Assembly: GCA_020137815.1 (NCBI GenBank)
Contig: CM035352.1
Location: 930,001 to 994,000, forward strand
Direction of reading: 5' to 3'
Source of the DNA: Hormiphora californensis
Lineage: Eukaryota > Animalia > Ctenophora
DNA: 64,000 bases
Each line of letters starts with the position of its first letter. Position 1 is the stretch's first letter. The translations under genes were made by a program, and so were the position numbers. The notes below the pieces were generated by a model. The model searched no databases, was not told the DNA's origin, and saw nothing but the letters and a program-made list of their open reading frames with translations. This document shows positions 53,915-62,392 of the stretch, one piece after another.

Positions 53915-55231
53915 TCAGTTTACAACATCCACATTAGACACCTCTCCAGGTATATTTCCTGCTTCTGATTCCTCCTCAATGGCCTTGATAAGACGTCCAA
54001 AGTCTGTGTTTAGAGTGGCAGTAGCACCAATACTTTGCCAAGGATATGGCATCCGTTGTTGCTGAAAACTGTCCGGTGAAAACTTGTCGGGCATCGCAGG
54101 GAATTGGGCACTAGGACACACGATGGTATTGTCAGGTCTGAAACTGGGCAGCATATTGGGCAGCATATTGGGCAGCATATTTGGCAGCATGTTTGGTTGC
54201 ATGTAGGCAAACTGATGATAGTTCTCTTGTTTCTCTAAATCTGATCCATCAGCAGAGGTATCAAGCCCTTCCTCTCCCTCTGTGGACATCTCCTCACTCT
54301 CTGATGCAATGATATACTCCCCGGCAGCCTCCCCAGCAGCAGCCTGACTCTGTTGGACCAACTCGTAAAATAACTCAGTGGGAATCTCTTCTTTGATGAT
54401 AAAACAATCTGAAACGGGAAAACAGTGTTAGCTTCTGGAGTAACAAACTTGTATTAGCCAGAGTTTAGACAGTATGAAGTGGCTAAAAATCGAGTTGATA
54501 ATCCTTTGAGACAACTCAATATAATATTAGGGGACTTACTCTCGGGTTTAACTGGTACATTCTCTGTAACTATCTCTGCCATGGGTTTGAGGAGGTTAGG
54601 TGGTGATGGTGCCTCATCCAGGTGCTGCAGGGGCGGTGGTGGTAGGTAGGAAATGGGTGGTGGTGCCTCCGAACCTGAGGAATGGAACATGGTAAAGAAT
54701 TGTCAAGACAAGAGGCTATCATAATTGCCGCTGGTAAGCCAAGACACTCACGAAAGAAGAAGAGCCTATATATATCATATTCATTATTCATGTCAATTAA
54801 TATCAGCACTAACCCATTCTGTGTAGATCATCCAGTTTCTCTCTCTTCATGACAACATGCCGTCTGAGTTCAGTGATTGCCTCTGTTAACATACCCCTAC
54901 TATAAAGTGATAACACCTCTTCATTACGCCATAACTCCTGGAAAACAGGATATCAGCAACTACTGGCCAATTGGGTAATGAGTTCTAAAGAGTAAAGAGG
55001 ATTTGGAGTTGTGGATTATTTACTAGTGCAACTCACCCAGACAACCTCCCGTATCTCTGAGAGGACATCAACCCACGCCCTCCTTTTGACTGTCTGAGGA
55101 AGGTATAGCTGTAGCCTATTAAAACCATCTGATATCAATCTTCTCCTTTCTCTCTCGTCCTCTCTATGTGCAGTCACTGGGTCTGTTGATTTCTTGATAG
55201 GTCTTTTTCTTTTTGATGATGATCCTGACAT
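53915..55231 (-). CDS. bHLH transcription factor, SOHLH/FIGLA/TCFL5-like. Approximate exons: 55231-55037, 54937-54814, 54674-54541, 54408-53915
   Basis: AHREDERERRRLISDGFNRLQLYLPQTVKRRAWVDVLSEIRE (H-x3-E-x2-RR basic region); exons splice in frame; Pro-rich and acidic C-terminus with (PNML)x4. Confidence 0.75.
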
Positions 55232-55239
55232 TAGTTTTA

Positions 55240-55270
55240 CTACAAGGGATAATAGGGACGGGGATTAATT
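55240..55270 (-). promoter_or_regulatory. Apparently unpaired 3' splice acceptor 8 nt before the bHLH ATG
   Basis: Minus strand: ttaatccccgtccctattatcccttgtAG|taaaactaATG. Confidence 0.6.
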
Positions 55271-55443
55271 GGAACTAATAGGGTGGGGGAATTAATTTGT
55301 ACTAACACAGGAAACTCATTGAATTTATCAACAACGTTAAATACAGAGATTATAAATATTTTAGATCGTATATTAACCAACAATTACATTGTATAAACAC
55401 TAGAAAACAATTTGAAATTCAAAAAACAGATTAACATGATAAT

Positions 55444-57135
55444 TCATTGTTCTCTGGCAGGTTCAATGTATTTCAGAACTTCAGCCTGTAGTTGGTCTTT
55501 CTTCATTTTACTAAGCCCCTTCACATTCCGCGACTTCAAGAATGCAACCAAGCTGTGATTGTTGACCTTCGAGATCTTTCCAGCAGCATAACAATCCTTT
55601 ACCTCACTTTCACTCAAGATCTTGGGAGCACTCTTAGGCTTTTTACCGCCAGGTGTCCCCTGACTAAGTCGAGGTGTCCCCTGGCTAAGTTGCGGTGGTG
55701 GTCGCTTGGGTGTCTGAGGAAGATCTACTGTAGGACGAGACTGGAATGCTCTAGGTTCGAATCGTGGTTTCGCCGGTAGTGCTACGCTCGAAATTGTAGT
55801 AGTAGGAGCAGTCGATGTAGTGGTTGCATGTTTCTCGAGCACCGAACGGACAACTGCATCTGGAATATCAAAATCATCAAACTCATCGTCCACAACGGGC
55901 GACTTTACAGTTTTAATACTGGATTTGATAGGGTTGGACAGGGTGGTGGATGGGATTTTAGAAACTGGATGCGATGGTTTGAAGGTTGGAACCGCTCTTG
56001 GAACGTTGCTATCAGCTGGTTTGATTGGCGTGTTCTGAGGATTTGATGGTGCTGGTCGTGAGTATGGTGCAAACTTGGGTTTCACCCTCTCACCGGTGTT
56101 CGAAACTTTGACTTTTACATGTTCAGGGGGTGAAAGATCAGGAAGTCGCGTTGGCACACGTGGTTTCACAGATTCTAACGGTATGAGGCATTGTACGTTT
56201 TGGTTTGGTTTTACGGCCACTGAAGGCTTTGATGGGAAATCTAGGCCAAATCGGGGAATCTTTTCTGAACAGACTTTACCGACAGATGACATGAAGTTGT
56301 CAATTGTATTAGAATCGACCCGACCCCGGACTTGAGGAAATCCCTTGCGGATGCAGTAGTATGGATAGGTCATGACAGGAGCACCCGGAAAGTTGAATTG
56401 AAGAGTGACAAACAAGTCAGTATCAGATGGAATTAAGATACCATGATAGTCGAGCCAGTAGGCGATCATATCTCGTTTATTTTTCAACGGACATCCCTCC
56501 GGTATATCGTATGAGACATTGTGCACCAGAGCCAGTTTAAAACTTGGTAGAACATAGCACGAATTGTCACCCATGTGCCGGGAATGAATAGTCCTAATTT
56601 CACGCCGGGAAAACTGCTGAATAATCTCAGGATTGATGTTGAAGGAGGATAGTTTGGGGACGAGTAGTTTGACAAGAGCACCCCTAACTGAGAGCGCCAC
56701 AGCTTTAGATTGGACCGTCAACTGGGCCTTGATACACCCCATCCAGGTGTTCTGGAAGAGACAAGTTTTACCCTCAAAATACTTGTTGTCCACTCTGGTC
56801 CAAGATGGGTGGAGGTAGGTATGGAGGGTGAAATCTAGACAATACTGGAGGATCTCTCGGGTTAGCTCAATTACCTTACTCAACTTCAGGTTACTCTCCG
56901 TGACACCACTGCTGAAGGAATCCCGCTGTACATCGGACTTATGAATTACAATGTAGACATGCCTCTTGCTCGAATGGGATGGACTTGAGAGGAGGTTGGA
57001 GGATTTCTTAAGGAGGGCTCGTGAACACGCACAATTGAGAAGGTGAGGACCGGAAGTTGTTGTTTCTGCCACTATTGTGACAAAATCACTTGTGTCTGGT
57101 GTAGTACTGAGAAATAACTGAGGCGCCTCATTCAT
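55444..57135 (-). CDS. C18orf63: C18orf63/DUF4708 homologue with a C-terminal SAP-like helical module, intronless (563 aa)
   Basis: Matches recalled motifs: ILQYCLDFTL...PSW, CYVLPSFK, IPEGCP, YWLDYHGILIP, TYPYYCIR, RVDS; C-terminus KISKVNNHSLVAFLKSRNVKGLSKMKKDQLQAEV. Confidence 0.85.
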   Translation of the reverse strand: MNEAPQLFLSTTPDTSDFVTIVAETTTSGPHLLNCACSRALLKKSSNLLSSPSHSSKRHVYIVIHKSDVQRDSFSSGVTESNLKLSKVIELTREILQYCLDFTLHTYLHPSWTRVDNKYFEGKTCLFQNTWMGCIKAQLTVQSKAVALSVRGALVKLLVPKLSSFNINPEIIQQFSRREIRTIHSRHMGDNSCYVLPSFKLALVHNVSYDIPEGCPLKNKRDMIAYWLDYHGILIPSDTDLFVTLQFNFPGAPVMTYPYYCIRKGFPQVRGRVDSNTIDNFMSSVGKVCSEKIPRFGLDFPSKPSVAVKPNQNVQCLIPLESVKPRVPTRLPDLSPPEHVKVKVSNTGERVKPKFAPYSRPAPSNPQNTPIKPADSNVPRAVPTFKPSHPVSKIPSTTLSNPIKSSIKTVKSPVVDDEFDDFDIPDAVVRSVLEKHATTTSTAPTTTISSVALPAKPRFEPRAFQSRPTVDLPQTPKRPPPQLSQGTPRLSQGTPGGKKPKSAPKILSESEVKDCYAAGKISKVNNHSLVAFLKSRNVKGLSKMKKDQLQAEVLKYIEPAREQ

Positions 57136-57141
57136 GACGGC

Positions 57142-57170
57142 CTAATGGGAAAAGGTAGTTGTTGTTAGCG
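57142..57170 (-). promoter_or_regulatory. Apparently unpaired 3' splice acceptor 6 nt before the C18orf63 ATG
   Basis: Minus strand: cgCTAACaacaactaccttttcccattAG|gccgtcATG. Confidence 0.65.
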
Positions 57171-57355
57171 GAAGGAGGGGTGGTTCATGGGGGCGGTGGG
57201 TTGATGAATTGTGTGAGATCAGGTAAAACACAGGAGGATATAACATGAATATTTTAGAACAACGAGCTGATAAAAGACAATTGTCACACAAAATTAGTTA
57301 CAAAGAACATGCAAGATGTCACACGAAATAATAATAAATTAAATACCACACATTA

Positions 57356-58396
57356 TCAATACTCCGACCTACAAACTCTCTCAAAGAAATGATCATCTTT
57401 ATATGCATCCCAAGCCATGTCTGATTTCGTTGCCTTGGTGACCACAACAAAGTTGCCCCGACGACCACGACCCTTCTTCCTCGTTGACTTGAAAGTTTTC
57501 ATTGTACTACAGGACCATTTCCCAATGCTCTCGTTATCACTATCCCAGCTGTTTTGTCGTTTCATTCCGCGAGATGCTAGAAACCGTTTGATAGTGGTAC
57601 CACCTTCAGGTGATTTTACTGGACTTGGGATGGATTCCAACCATTTCTTGGTGTTTGCAAACCTAGGGCTCACCCTAACAGACAACCTAGGGCTGGTACG
57701 TCGGGCTTTTGAAAGACGAGGACTTGTGCGTCTAGTGGTTGGGAACTTTGGGCTTGTTTGACTACTGCTTCGGACGGCGTTTTTACGGTTTTTCTCCTTC
57801 TTCACCGAGAAACAGGCAGCGTTGCTCCCCCGTTGTGGCCGTGACACCGTGTTGAATATATCTGCGTGGTTTGATTGTGAGTTGTTCCGAACAGGAGATT
57901 GAGGTTTCCGGTGTTGTTGGTCATGTTGTTGCTTCAGCAACGCTTCAAAAGAACACGGTGGCGTCAGTGGTCTGGCATCCTCCTGAGAGTGGGTCAACTT
58001 TGGCGGTACAATCATACTTTGTTGGGACAGATGGGGAACGATCAGACTTTGTTGGGACAAATGTTGCAGATCATTATTCCCACGCACCGACTTGATGTCC
58101 TCCCTGACTTCCCTCATCATTTCTTCCAGTTTGCTCTTCTGCAACACCACGTATTCACTGTTTGGAGCAAACAACTTGTTCACCAGCTCATTAGTCACCC
58201 GCATGCTCACGTGCATCTCCTGTACCATCGAGCACAAACTGCTAACTGAATCCGCGAGAGCACTGTTCTGAGCTTCACTGACTTGGTCTCGAAATTTCCG
58301 AATCTGAGGCTCGGGTGATGGAGTTTTTGATAATAAAAGTGGTTCATTTAAATAACTTTTAAAGAGCATGGCTGCTCCTCCACTGCTGATGCTCAT
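57356..58396 (-). CDS. Intronless coiled-coil protein with an SP/SQ-rich basic tail (346 aa from the first ATG); candidate IHO1/CCDC36 (Mer2 family) homologue
   Basis: Long ORF with N-terminal heptads; LFKSYLNEPLLL...IRKFRDQVSEAQ...SSLCSMVQEM resembles the recalled IHO1 segment IFTKYQTKPQLF...LEQFEEKKKRAK...YNFVSNVRES. The ORF is secure; the identity is tentative. Confidence 0.6.
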   Translation of the reverse strand: MSISSGGAAMLFKSYLNEPLLLSKTPSPEPQIRKFRDQVSEAQNSALADSVSSLCSMVQEMHVSMRVTNELVNKLFAPNSEYVVLQKSKLEEMMREVREDIKSVRGNNDLQHLSQQSLIVPHLSQQSMIVPPKLTHSQEDARPLTPPCSFEALLKQQHDQQHRKPQSPVRNNSQSNHADIFNTVSRPQRGSNAACFSVKKEKNRKNAVRSSSQTSPKFPTTRRTSPRLSKARRTSPRLSVRVSPRFANTKKWLESIPSPVKSPEGGTTIKRFLASRGMKRQNSWDSDNESIGKWSCSTMKTFKSTRKKGRGRRGNFVVVTKATKSDMAWDAYKDDHFFERVCRSEY

Positions 58397-58412
58397 CTTC
58401 TTGGACTTGATA

Positions 58413-58440
58413 CTAAAGTTGGTAAGGAAGTGGTTAGAAG
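58413..58440 (-). promoter_or_regulatory. Apparently unpaired 3' splice acceptor (candidate trans-splice site) 16 nt before the IHO1-like ATG
   Basis: Minus strand: ttCTAACcacttccttaccaactttAG|tatcaagtccaagaagATG. Confidence 0.6.
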
Positions 58441-58582
58441 TTATTAGCAATGGGTAATTCAAGCAGCAAACTCTAATGGAAATATAAATAACAAAATTTG
58501 TAACGAAATTGTAACAAACAGTTCACAGAATTAAAAAACCAAATAAACCATTCCATTTTTAAACTAAAGAAGAAGTCTCTGG

Positions 58583-60056
58583 TTACTCCTTTGCATCATC
58601 AATCCCACCAGCGGTGATACAGAAGGTCGCCTCGGCTTCAGGCATATCTGGACTATCATAAATCTTTGCTATCCTCAACTCGCCTCTCCCTAAAATAAGA
58701 GTTGTGATTAGATAATAATGGTATAATTTGACCTAACATATATCACCTAACATACTAATGTAGGTACCTTTTCTGAGGTAAATCCGTGTTGTTGAAGCAT
58801 GAGCGATAATATTTCCACCGATCGGTTTTTTCGGGTCAGCTTGAAAGCTCATTGCCGCACCAGGGTCTGCCGTCATTTGGTTTGTAACGAACACCGCCAA
58901 ATTATACTCCTCAGATATTTTTTGCAACCTGCAGGAGTAAAATCAGGAGTAAAGCAGAAATAAAAATATCGTAATCCAATTTCTTATCTTTAGCAAGTTA
59001 TATTGTATCAGGTTAGCGAGAGAAATGGGAGAAATACTTTATCAATGCATGGAAAATTGAAGTGATTTGTGTTACACACGTACCTTGCCATGAGTTGTGC
59101 TAGTTTCTGCTGCCTGTCCGCCAACTCACCGCGACCACTGAAGTCAACTCGGAACAGAGCCATCACACTATCAACTATCAGGAGCTGCAAAATGAGGATT
59201 TTATGAACCGATATAGATAGAGCCGTGGTCCGTGGAATGGAGGTTTGTTGCAGCTATTGATGAAATGAATAATGTGCAGTTTGCATAAATGAACGTACGC
59301 GTAGGTAGTATTATCTCAGATTAATCGGCCCCTGATTTCCCAGATAATTTGGCAAATCAGGGGCCGATTAATCTAACTGTATTACAGCTCAGATTATCTA
59401 ACCTTGAATATTCCTGGTTCCTCGTGGCATTTAGCGGCAGCAAAGTCCAGGAGCTCCATCTGATGCTCGCTGGTGTAGGCTCGTGCATACAACACGTTAT
59501 CCAACATGGCAGTGTGGTCAAGGTTAAACCGGTCCGCAATGGTCCTAAGTCGATCTGGCCGGAATGTGTTTTCTGTATCAATGAAAATAATCTTCCCACC
59601 TCCATAACCATTAGCACCGGGTAGCTGCGTCAAAACACACAAGGTATGTGAAAGCTGAGTTTTCCCCGTCCTAAATTCCCCGAATGCTTCTGTTATGGAC
59701 ATGCTTTCCATCCCTCCACCAAGCAGTTTATCAAGCTCTTTACTGCCCGTACTGACCTTGAAAATATTTTTCCTTTTCTCACTCACCTCAAAGGCGGTGA
59801 CAAACCCAGAGTCACACAAAGTCTTACAAACGTCCTTTATTTTCTCCACTTTGGCCTCTGAAAGCCCCTTGATATTGCACAACTTTTTGGCGGTAGTCAT
59901 AAGAATTCCCTTTAGGGTGCAAATGCCAGCGCCCTTTAACTTCTTGATATCCGCAACATTGATGCCGTGAGATTGGAGAAGATCGACATCTTGGAAATCT
60001 ACAGACGCCTCCGCCTCATACGTAACTGTTTCTTGTTCTACCGCACTCGCAAACAT
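58583..60056 (-). CDS. DMC1: Meiotic recombinase DMC1 (exons 60056-59403, 59184-59084, 58928-58768, 58689-58583)
   Basis: [122 protein letters not shown] stop. Confidence 0.97.
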
Positions 60057-60447
60057 GCTATTCTTATCAGGAATATGAAGATAATTATTGGGACTGGTCT
60101 GGTGGGATTCGATTCCAGAATTCATTTGATTTCCTTCGCATTATAATGTTGAGTTTCTTATGCGAAGGTAGCCTGTTTTATGACTATTGTGACTGGGTAA
60201 ATTATAAGACGTGCAATAAATTGTATCGTTCTCATTTCAAGTCTGTGTCAGGGGAAGTAAAGTTTTTGTATACGCTTCGGCGCTTCTGAATTAAATATAA
60301 TGGAGCCTTCGTTTCGTCCCATGGGTGGTCACTGGTCACTAATCACCCAGAGAGAGAGAGTTGTGCAGTTAAATGGATTATTCTTATCTCTCTATATAAA
60401 AAACCTAGGGTCCTGAGATTTTTGTTCTGGTCATTTCTTAGAGCATC

Positions 60448-62392
60448 ATGGCCATTTTATCTGCCTTGAAGGGCCTTCGACACAAGTACAGATATTTTGC
60501 ATATCTACTAACAATTCTCATGCTGCTATCGGAAATGGTGTCAAGGTTTGTTGTTGATAATTTGAGTCTTAGCATAATCTAAATTGCCATATTTTCAGTT
60601 GCGGAGTATCCTTGGCAATGCTTGGAGGTCTAGCGAAACAGGATTGCAATGATCCAAGTGACACGGGAGAGTACTGTTGGAGCGAGGCTACCAAAGCTGC
60701 AGTTGTGGCCGCATACTTTTATGGCAACTGGTTACAGGTGAAAGAGGAATAGAAAATTGCGTTATTGTTATCAGCTATAGTAGTTCAACACCGATAGATC
60801 TTGATTTAGTGCGAATTCCAAACTGACAGATCTGCGTTCCAAATTACGGGATTCTTATTCCGAACTCCTCCTGCAGATCATACCAACGACACTAGCTAAG
60901 CGGACCGGATTCACCATAACTACACGAGTAATAGCACTTGTGGATGGTATCATACAGATGACATTTCCCTACTGCATACAAATTAGCATTCCCCTAACCC
61001 TGGTGCTGCAGGTTAGTGAATCTGTCAAATATTGGTGTGATCATAATTGCATGAGTTATTATTTTCTTAATTCAAATTGATATATCCAGGCACTGCGAGG
61101 TATGTGTGGAGGAATATTCTTCACGAGTAGCATGGAGTTCACACGAAAATGGGGCATTGGAAGCGAGTGTAAAACATTCATCTCTTTTGTAGGTCAGTAC
61201 TACATATATTACACATGACAGTATTATAATATGATAACTAATTCATGATGACTTCATAGTGTGTTTGTTTGTTAGTAAACCCTGTTTACCGTTCACAGGA
61301 ATTGCATGTCAATTAGGCAATGGTTTGGGGCCCTTTCTTGCTGGTCTCGTGTCGACTCATGTGGGCTGGCGCTACTTTTTCTACATAAATGGGCTCTCTT
61401 ATCTCATTGTCCTAGTGTTGATGGTTATTTTCGTGCCTGACTGCCCCCAACATGCCTGGTAAGAGTGAAATCTCCTAGGCTAATAAATTATCTTAACGTA
61501 CGGCATAGAATATTCTAAACCTTTTTACAGGGCCATGAGTGAGACTGAAAAAGCATTGTTTGAGGAGAAACAGAAGGTACTGATTCGCAGCGTCTCCGAA
61601 AACAGAGCAGAGGATGCCCCGAAAAGCATTACATCTAAAATAAAAGACATCCTATCGAGAGTGTACGTGATATCGTTTTGCATTTTCGCGTTCATGGATG
61701 TGTTTCAACTTGTAACATTGATTGCAGTGACACCCTTCTTCATGCATGATATCCTGGAGGCCAGCACTGAGTTTATCAGTTATACCAACCTTTTCGGTGG
61801 TCTGGCAACGGTGGCCTGTACTCTTGTGTGCATCATGACTCTTCCCTGGCTAGATAAGCGATACCCGTGGTTTTGGGTTCGGTTATGTTTCATGACCATA
61901 CCCCAGATAATCCGGACAGTGCTGTATATCGGGATAGCCTACATATCAAACAAGTGGGCGGTTGCTGTCATGGTGATAGCAAATCTAACAACATGGGGAA
62001 CCATATTTAGTGGATCAATCGTCACCGTCAACTATGAGATAGACCCGAAGAAAGCCCCTATCACCCTGGCAGTCATCAATGGAGTTGGACAACTTTGTGG
62101 GTTCATTGTTCCTCTTCTAAGGGCAGCTATAACTAATGTAGAGAAGCATCTCCCGCTGTATAAGGAGCGGTGGCAGCAGTTCTACTGTTTGACAGCCATC
62201 ACTTCGACCCTAGCCATGATGGCCATACTACTTGGGATGCAGCTCCGACCGAACGAGTGGAAGAAACACCACTCACTTCTGGCGGAGGAGACGGTCAAGA
62301 AGGAGGTGAAGGGATTCGTAAATCTCGCCATAGAGGCAGAACCAACACGGGGAGAATCAATTGTCATGGAGAACAAAGCTGCACTGTATTGA
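60448..62392 (+). CDS. MFS transporter, SLC17/sialin-like (copy 1), multi-exon
   Basis: SR|CGVSLAM, YCWSEATKAAVVAAYFYGNWLQ, LQ|ALRG, GWRYFFYING, PDCPQH, AVINGVGQLCGFIVP, RWQQFY. Confidence 0.85.

Follow-up and report, generated by a model that had tools for sequence, protein, structure and literature searches.

In the operons of Caenorhabditis elegans, the poly(A) site of one gene lies about 100 nt from the trans-splice acceptor of the next, the spacer between them is U/pyrimidine-rich, and the genes are germline-biased. The operons of Ciona have almost no intercistronic DNA, and Hydra reportedly has trans-splicing of a spliced leader (SL) with a few documented operons. In chaetognaths, candidate operons have been delineated by gaps below 250 bp together with SL evidence, and such operons are over-represented among germline markers (PMC12460157). 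SL trans-splicing has also been published for the ctenophore Hormiphora californensis, where at least 56% of the Iso-Seq reads bear a leader (PMC8527503). According to a 2021 review, no operon or polycistronic mRNA had been reported in ctenophores (PMC7986045), and no later report of a ctenophore operon was found in the literature that we searched.

Here we analyze a window of 64,000 nucleotides of the H. californensis genome (contig CM035352.1), in which four genes headed by DMC1 are closely packed on one strand. This arrangement is best explained as a tightly packed cluster of germline/meiotic genes that is conserved within the phylum.

Results

Layout of the DMC1 cluster

All four genes lie head-to-tail on the minus strand. 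The DMC1 coding region (58583..60056) runs from the ATG at 60056 to the stop codon at 58585-58583 and is followed by the intronless gene 2 (57356..58396; ATG 58396, stop 57358-57356), the intronless gene 3 (55444..57135; ATG 57135, stop 55446-55444), and gene 4, which has four exons (53915..55231; ATG 55231, stop 53917-53915). The stop-to-ATG gaps, re-read from the sequence, are 186, 220, and 212 nt, as in the tight quartet described in the first-pass annotation. Plus-strand genes bound the block at both ends. An MFS transporter gene is divergent to DMC1, with ~390 nt (392) from ATG to ATG, and an EF-hand gene is convergent to gene 4 with 509 nt from stop to stop. The divergent intergenic region (60057..60447), which is covered by none of the RNA contigs described below, must contain the promoters of both genes as well as the DMC1 outron, and a TATATAAAAA box is found on its plus strand at ~60390-60399. 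An Rfam search of the region gave no family matches.

The genome has a density of one gene per 7.8 kb. Given the published count of 14,265 genes for the 110-Mb genome (PMC8527503) and an exponential gap distribution with a mean of ~3 kb, we roughly estimate that fewer than one four-gene same-strand run with gaps of at most 220 nt would be expected by chance genome-wide.

Protein products

The identity of DMC1 (exons 60056-59403, 59184-59084, 58928-58768, and 58689-58583; 340 aa) is solid. The product matches the Pfam Rad51 family (PF08423) at 5e-52 and scores 351 bits versus human DMC1 and 194 bits versus RAD51, so that the proposed assignment to DMC1 is preferred. The 340-aa model fits the DMC1 proteins of ctenophores, with 89-92% identity to those of Mnemiopsis and Bolinopsis, and a spliced RNA contig from a close relative bears out each of the three introns. 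Similarly, gene 3 (563 aa) is, as had been proposed, a homologue of C18orf63/DUF4708, with a match to PF15813 at 9e-39 (133.8 bits versus a cut-off of 27). It has homologues in P. bachei, M. leidyi, and B. microptera, and weakly matches a fish protein that is annotated as C18orf63 homolog (2e-9).

In the product of gene 2 (346 aa), a conserved motif at the N-terminus is accompanied by a ~75-residue helix and a basic, disordered tail, and further motifs are conserved at the C-terminus. In particular, helices are predicted at residues 7-16 and 31-106, and islands of conservation are found within the disordered tail. It matches neither Pfam nor the protein atlas. Nine relatives were found at E values of at most 1e-10, several of them near-equal in length and with conserved motifs in common, and all those that could be identified come from ctenophores or from contigs that also bear ctenophore-like DMC1 and DUF4708 genes. 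Gene 2 is a predicted coiled-coil protein restricted to ctenophores. The label 'IHO1-like', under which it had been annotated, found no sequence support: IHO1/Mer2 models gave no match in gene 2 or in the seven relatives tested, and PF15771 (IHO1) stayed below the cut-off everywhere in the genome, with the best score (16 bits) at another locus. Proteins of the IHO1/Mer2/Rec15 group are disordered apart from a coiled coil in the centre and a conserved motif at each terminus (PMC5695089, PMC10425845). The layout of gene 2 resembles this scheme, but it is a generic one, and no alignment of the gene 2 motifs to SSM1 or SSM2 was obtained.

Gene 4 (exons 55231-55037, 54937-54814, 54674-54540, and 54408-53915; 315 aa) encodes the basic region and helix 1 of a bHLH domain in exon 1 and has an acidic, proline-rich C-terminus. 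The junction of exons 2 and 3 is present in an RNA contig of the close relative, and the remaining junctions were read from the sequence. The HLH match (PF00010; 24.7 bits versus a cut-off of 20.7, 2e-5) is confined to the basic region plus helix 1, and the other exons match no Pfam family. All neighbours in the protein atlas are HLH proteins with scores of at most 0.82, the nearest cluster being SREBP-like, and no match was found in PDB. Of the earlier description as a 'SOHLH-like bHLH', the HLH domain stands, weakly, whereas membership of the SOHLH/FIGLA subgroup found no support, the signal being that of a generic bHLH. Gene 4 may be classed, on this weak match, as a putative divergent bHLH.

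Intercistronic gaps

Each gap was searched against the 110.7-Mb genome and proved to be single-copy DNA. This agrees with the repeat-free gaps described earlier, save for a C-rich tandem duplication (27 nt, 2.1 copies) at 55250-55305 in gap 3, which is their sole blemish. On the transcribed strand the gaps contain 39-43% T, and a motif search of this strand found no AATAAA, ATTAAA, or GTRAGT in any of the three; the first-pass annotation of U-rich gaps that lack AATAAA and end in Py-AG, two of them with CTAAC, was thereby borne out. In gap 1 (58397..58582) the predicted DMC1 3'UTR is followed by a pyrimidine-rich spacer with CTAAC at 58437 and the acceptor AG at 58414-13. In gap 2 (57136..57355) the 3'UTR of gene 2 gives way to a C/T-rich spacer of 99 nt; CTAAC is found at 57168 and the AG at 57143-42. 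Gap 3 (55232..55443) has TAAAAT at 55363, CTGTGT at 55310, and AG at 55241-40. The candidate acceptors are thus located 16, 6, and 8 nt ahead of the respective ATGs.

Spliced leader and transcripts

The RNA evidence consists of assembled contigs from a bulk marine metatranscriptome, which represent a relative with 90-95% identity and not the sequenced animal. The DMC1 contig spans 59926-60057 and continues with 20 extra 5' letters, which are absent from the window and have 206 dispersed copies in the genome. Among the matches listed, the nearest same-strand upstream copy is ~0.9 Mb away. The 24-mer of the published leader occurs 652 times in the genome, which contains two classes of leader. 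The leader copies, the DMC1 contig, and the published data (PMC8527503) bear out the expectation that this organism uses SL trans-splicing. Moreover, the contig places the DMC1 acceptor AG at 60058..60059, 1-2 nt before the ATG, which demonstrates at DMC1 itself that a short Py-AG acceptor before an ATG is a real SL site. The leader was seen only on DMC1; the relative's contigs stop short of the 5' ends of genes 2-4.

At the 3' side, the DMC1 contig reaches 58526. The gene 2 contig (57799-57241) continues on the RNA strand into 18 consecutive A residues, which maps a poly(A) site at 57241, 115 nt past the stop codon and 99 nt ahead of the predicted acceptor of gene 3; TAAAAT precedes the site by 15 nt, and CTGTGT follows it by 8 nt. 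Gene 2, the one gene with a mapped 3' end, is polyadenylated ~100 nt upstream of the next acceptor, a spacing that matches that of nematode operons. We infer the putative sites of 3' end formation in gaps 1 and 3 from motifs only. Full-length homologues of DMC1 and gene 2 were found on RNA-sized contigs of 1.2-1.65 kb, and the mature mRNAs of the cluster are monocistronic. The metatranscriptome recovered genes 1, 2, and 4 but not gene 3. None of the relative's contigs bridges a gap, although contigs from poly(A) libraries cannot prove the absence of such a transcript.

Linkage across ctenophores and similar clusters

Gene order in related genomes, the comparison suggested in the first-pass annotation, revealed that at least three of the four genes, DMC1, gene 2, and gene 3, stay linked in Mnemiopsis, Bolinopsis, and several further ctenophore contigs. 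M. leidyi has ACHWQZ_G006566 as its DUF4708 gene and ACHWQZ_G006568 as its DMC1, and in B. microptera both genes are on one chromosome. Homologues also co-occur on contigs of 6,731, 12,069, 14,041, and 348,408 bp, among others. The linkage (same contig or same chromosome) was found in seven of the ten lineages of the DUF4708 gene. Microsynteny in ctenophores has been reported to be poor, and Hormiphora and Mnemiopsis otherwise have at most four genes per common block.

A genome scan flagged further clusters of similar layout. The one examined, on the same chromosome, is composed of unrelated genes (F-box/LRR, GNAT, and NDUFA12) in a like arrangement; its gaps measure 201 and 130 nt, and its acceptors precede the ATGs by 7 and 5 nt.

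Discussion

The SL use, the one-strand geometry, the RNA contigs, the linkage, and the recurrence of the layout, taken together, make co-transcription plausible, and we consider the chances that the cluster is transcribed in an operon-like manner to be evenly balanced. Transcription would start in the ~390-nt region common to DMC1 and the MFS gene and read through the cluster. Each upstream cistron would then be cleaved and polyadenylated, with SL trans-splicing at 58412, 57141, and 55239, and weak internal promoters may contribute as well. Linkage is no proof of co-transcription, because tight spacing itself makes rearrangement less likely. A serious rival is that the four genes are independent, each gap, perhaps along with the terminal part of the gene before it, holding a compact promoter, and a very short outron being replaced by the SL; the linkage would then follow from packing or overlapping regulatory DNA. 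The MFS gene needs a promoter of its own, its TATA box is only ~50 nt away from its likely acceptor, and the divergent region must accommodate two promoters within 392 nt. Therefore promoters here can be very compact, and short gaps alone cannot exclude internal ones. Consistent with this, gaps 1 and 3 contain TATTTATA, a candidate TATA box, at a distance of 70-120 nt ahead of their acceptors, and gaps 2 and 3 have C-rich stretches like CACCC or GC boxes. The lack of a bridging contig, the failure to recover gene 3 where its neighbours were recovered, and the lack of a published ctenophore operon point in the same direction. Nevertheless, the 99 nt between the gene 2 poly(A) site and the gene 3 acceptor contain no TATA-like motif, three successive same-strand gaps of ~200 nt are unexpected at this gene density, and the linkage has been kept in a phylum with scrambled gene order. 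We regard independent promoters as a real possibility, somewhat short of an even chance.

Two other explanations appear much less probable. If the acceptors of genes 2-4 served mainly for cis-splicing, with donors in the DMC1 exons or in a non-coding 5' exon, the locus would be one complex, alternatively spliced unit. Gene clusters with an apparently common first exon have indeed been described in this genome, but the same study ascribes them to mis-mapped leaders (PMC8527503); the poly(A) site of gene 2, the RNA-sized contigs with full-length DMC1 and gene 2 homologues, and the lack of a GTRAGT donor in the gaps also make this explanation improbable. That some of the models are mistaken, gene 2 being spurious or genes 3 and 4 being a single gene, could be suspected from the lack of Pfam and atlas matches for gene 2. 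This suspicion is largely refuted, and we give it hardly any weight, since gene 2 has nine relatives, several near-equal in length with conserved motifs, and a polyadenylated RNA contig, gene 3 terminates at its stop codon like the full-length homologues, and the junction of exons 2 and 3 of gene 4 is present in RNA.

All gaps of the cluster are shorter than 250 bp and at least one of its genes bears an SL, so that it falls within the operational definition of an operon applied to chaetognaths. The fullest form of the co-transcription reading, in which a DMC1-led, SL-resolved, and phylum-conserved polycistronic unit would give Ctenophora its first documented operon, is tentative, and we consider it less likely than not. 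If validated, it would extend SL-resolved operons to a further, early-branching animal phylum and would inform the debate on the proposed association of operons with germline expression; the DMC1 unit and the flagged clusters of the same layout would together add a phylum to the list of those with SL operons. It would also single out two proteins as meiotic factors, namely the C18orf63/DUF4708 protein, for which a human homologue exists, and the fast-evolving coiled-coil protein of gene 2. The conserved linkage, one of the few blocks kept between Hormiphora and Mnemiopsis, offers a guilt-by-association hypothesis for the uncharacterised human C18orf63, and the cluster points to the ctenophore-specific gene 2 protein as a possible meiotic factor.

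Among the known systems, the DMC1 cluster resembles the SL2-type operons of C. elegans in its one-strand arrangement, the ~100-nt distance from poly(A) site to acceptor, the pyrimidine-rich spacer, and the acceptors near the ATGs. Unlike C. elegans, Hormiphora has no known operon-specific leader, the leader was seen on the first gene, and the cluster is known from its genes and from contigs of mature mRNAs. In adding the SL to monocistronic and clustered genes alike, Hormiphora is similar to tunicates (Ciona, Oikopleura) and chaetognaths, which use a single SL or non-specialised SLs. The operons of these animals have been validated by RNA genome-wide, whereas the DMC1 cluster is known from sequence and a few contigs of a relative; its gaps, unlike those of Ciona, comprise ~100-nt spacers and 3'UTRs. 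Like Hydra, the ctenophore is an early-branching animal with SL trans-splicing, but it belongs to another phylum and has an unrelated leader. Finally, the deeply kept gene order and, plausibly, a single tissue of expression are shared with microsyntenic blocks held together by common or interleaved regulatory DNA. Such blocks usually extend over tens of kilobases and have mixed orientations, whereas the genes of the DMC1 cluster follow each other head-to-tail across gaps of ~200 nt.

Layout of the DMC1 gene cluster

Four genes lie head to tail on the minus strand: DMC1 (ATG 60056, stop 58585-58583), a gene for a coiled-coil protein (gene 2; ATG 58396, stop 57358-57356), a homologue of C18orf63 (gene 3; ATG 57135, stop 55446-55444), and a bHLH gene (gene 4; ATG 55231, stop 53917-53915). 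The first-pass annotation had read them as a candidate meiotic operon under one promoter, resolved by spliced leader (SL) trans-splicing. The underlying observation is real and well described. On direct reading, the stop-to-ATG gaps of 186, 220, and 212 nt (gaps 1, 2, and 3, respectively) are exact; a motif search of the gaps found no AATAAA, ATTAAA, or GTRAGT, CTAAC is present in two of them, and an AG closes each gap 16, 6, and 8 nt ahead of the next ATG. The T content of the gaps on the RNA strand is 39-43%, and every gap is unique in the genome (search of 110,691,255 bp in 45 pieces). Within this assembly the window corresponds to C3:930001-994000. An Rfam scan of the cluster region gave no family match.

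Downstream, the cluster is bordered by a plus-strand EF-hand gene that converges on gene 4, with 509 nt between the two stop codons, and upstream by a plus-strand MFS transporter gene divergent to DMC1 (392 nt ATG to ATG). The stretch 60386-60450 (plus strand) at the start of the latter, SLC17-like gene contains a TATATAAAAA box about 50 nt upstream of a pyrimidine-AG acceptor at 60440-60441, which is 6 nt ahead of ATG 60448. Judged from these positions, the MFS outron would be very short and its promoter very compact.

When the three gaps and the sequence upstream of DMC1 were compared by k-mers, all that emerged was a pair of motifs resembling 3'-end signals, TAAAAT and CTGTGT, shared by gaps 2 and 3; nothing convincing as a promoter or spacer element common to them was found. 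On the minus strand, C-rich stretches similar to CACCC/GC boxes precede the acceptors of gene 4 (55250-55305) and gene 3 (57185-57215) by 30-60 nt, the stretch in gap 3 coinciding with a 27-nt tandem duplication. The sequence CCACCCATGG is also found upstream of DMC1 at ~60320, and could, like the C-rich stretches, be a candidate promoter or spacer element.

Identity of the encoded proteins

The nearest protein matches come from Pleurobrachia bachei models (93-100% identity). The identity of DMC1 is secure (Pfam Rad51, 5e-52): its exon 1 scores 351 bits against human DMC1 versus 194 against RAD51, and the four-exon model encodes 340 aa, the same length as the Mnemiopsis and Bolinopsis proteins. 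Gene 3 belongs to the DUF4708/C18orf63 family, as proposed (Pfam, 9e-39). The C18orf63 papers listed appear to be omics screens, a few of them on oocyte, sperm, or testis, and no functional study stands among these matches. Gene 4 had been described as a SOHLH-like bHLH. Its exon 1 passes the Pfam HLH gathering score, the match covering the basic region and helix 1 only, and no tie to SOHLH/FIGLA was found. Exons 2-4 have no Pfam match, and no PDB relative of the bHLH exon was found; as we read the translation, the strongest helix 2 candidate is encoded by exon 2, implying a long loop.

Gene 2 is a real, conserved gene with nine relatives at E <= 1e-10. Several of them are near-equal in size (337-354 aa), with common motifs at both termini and in the middle of the protein; one is a named P. 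bachei protein, and several others are on contigs with ctenophore-like DMC1 and DUF4708 genes. An AlphaFold model predicts helices at residues 7-16 and 31-106 followed by disorder, with a mean pLDDT of 53, which is below use for fold search. An atlas search with gene 2 gave no match, a profile search against PDB gave short coiled-coil noise only, and metagenome scans with the gene 2 and gene 3 proteins gave no matches. The predicted layout resembles that of IHO1/Mer2 (PMC5695089, PMC10425845), but such a layout is generic. The IHO1 Pfam model matches neither gene 2 nor its relatives, and finds nothing above cut-off anywhere in the genome; the IHO1-like label is therefore an idea rather than a finding.

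Genes 2 and 3 (57359-58396 and 55447-57135) are fast-evolving, with 28-50% protein identity across ctenophores; DMC1 retains 89-92% over the same span. Reproductive proteins typically evolve fast.

Conserved linkage in ctenophores

Linkage of genes 1-3 is conserved across ctenophores. It was judged from NCBI locus tags and from homologues on contigs of identical length, and thus describes shared location rather than strand or spacing. In M. leidyi, DUF4708 (ACHWQZ_G006566) and DMC1 (ACHWQZ_G006568) share a 17.37-Mb sequence and are separated by a single gene, and in B. microptera both are on a 21.28-Mb chromosome, their protein accessions differing by six. Homologues of all three genes are found on a contig of 348,408 bp, those of genes 2 and 3 on contigs of 14,041 and 12,069 bp, and those of DMC1 and gene 3 on contigs of 6,731, 400,146, 328,638, and 1,831,460 bp. 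We take identical length to mean the same contig, as seven coincidences are not credible. With gene 3 lineages counted as separate at a difference above 10%, seven of ten show the linkage, and the 28-50% identity of the gene 2 and gene 3 proteins across linked lineages implies deep divergence. Microsynteny between Hormiphora and Mnemiopsis is limited, the largest blocks comprising four genes (PMC8527503).

Trans-splicing and polyadenylation

Contigs from an oligo-dT marine metatranscriptome match the cluster at 90-95%, and thus represent RNA of a close relative. All three DMC1 introns are spliced in them as predicted, and the exon 2-3 junction of gene 4 is present. The contig over 59926-60057 extends 5' by 20 letters that are absent from the window and dispersed in the genome, so that DMC1 is SL trans-spliced 1-2 nt ahead of ATG 60056, which confirms this start codon. 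The leader on DMC1 shows that acceptors of the same type are real SL sites. The gene 2 transcript is polyadenylated separately and close to the next acceptor: its contig stops at 57241 and continues into a poly(A) run, 115 nt past the stop codon and 99 nt ahead of the AG at 57143-42. On the minus strand, TAAAAT (57256) lies 15 nt upstream and CTGTGT (57233) 8 nt downstream of this site, and both recur in gap 3 (55363 and 55310). They are likely local 3'-end signals replacing AATAAA. Full-length DMC1 and gene 2 homologues occupy contigs of 1.2-1.65 kb, which fits monocistronic mature mRNAs.

The H. californensis leader is carried by 56% or more of the Iso-Seq reads, and 718 copies were reported in a 110-Mb, 44-scaffold assembly (PMC8527503); a whole-genome search with its 3' 24-mer yielded 652. 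The leader on the relative's DMC1 mRNA represents a second class, ending in ...AAAACTATTTATTGAG, with 206 dispersed copies (e.g. C1:3489319 and C3:922912). The full second leader is about 40 nt long and resembles the published one, sharing its TTGAG end, but does not belong to its '>90% identical' class. The same ~20-nt stretch precedes 25 of the 26 second-class copies read, and unrelated sequence follows each.

Copies of both classes (loci L001-L026 and L031-L044) run directly into unrelated sequences that belong to repeat families. The same family can stand behind either leader, for example L031 and L039 versus L001, L005, and L007, or L033 versus L010, L018, and L021, and some copies form head-to-head inverted pairs (L023, L043, and L044). 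Two open reading frames of these SL-prefixed families have no Pfam identity. By their arrangement, the copies look like trans-spliced transcripts that have been retroposed, and not like SL RNA genes; retrocopies may thus make up many of the leader loci in the published set of 718.

Evidence for and against co-transcription

The operon interpretation is supported in part and undecided. The block would be co-transcribed and then resolved by SL trans-splicing. Three short same-strand gaps in a row, where gene density averages one per 7.8 kb genome-wide, argue for this, as do the 99-nt spacer between the gene 2 poly(A) site and the gene 3 acceptor, which has no TATA-like motif, and the linkage kept across ctenophores. 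In favour, too, the block would count as an operon under the operational definition applied to chaetognaths. However, tight packing by itself favours keeping gene order, and gaps 1 and 3 hold TATTTATA. The MFS gene needs its own promoter, and its TATA box is about 50 nt from the likely acceptor, which means that very little DNA can suffice for a promoter here. Moreover, no bridging RNA is found among the relative's contigs, although these contigs, which leave gene 3, the spacers, and the 5' half of both gene 2 and gene 4 uncovered, cannot prove absence. On balance, we give about even chances that the block is co-transcribed at least in part, and consider the proposed single-promoter, functionally coherent meiotic unit rather doubtful.

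A second same-strand cluster is located on the minus strand 2.2 Mb from the DMC1 block (C3:3235130-3238367; locus L028:2130-5367). It comprises F-box/LRR, GNAT acetyltransferase, and NDUFA12-type genes, with gaps of 201 and 130 nt, acceptors 7 and 5 nt ahead of the ATGs, and a CTGTGT motif in a gap. This layout beyond meiosis genes raises the odds of ctenophore operons. Since members elsewhere are functionally unrelated, the mechanism does not call for functional coherence of the DMC1 block; the case for such coherence rests mainly on DMC1 and the conserved linkage.

The DMC1 block is a useful lead on C18orf63. A literature search found no report of a ctenophore operon; should the interpretation hold, the phylum would gain its first recorded operon of the SL type. 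The operon-like architecture appears to extend through the genome and to join genes of unrelated function, as it does in other animals that have operons.
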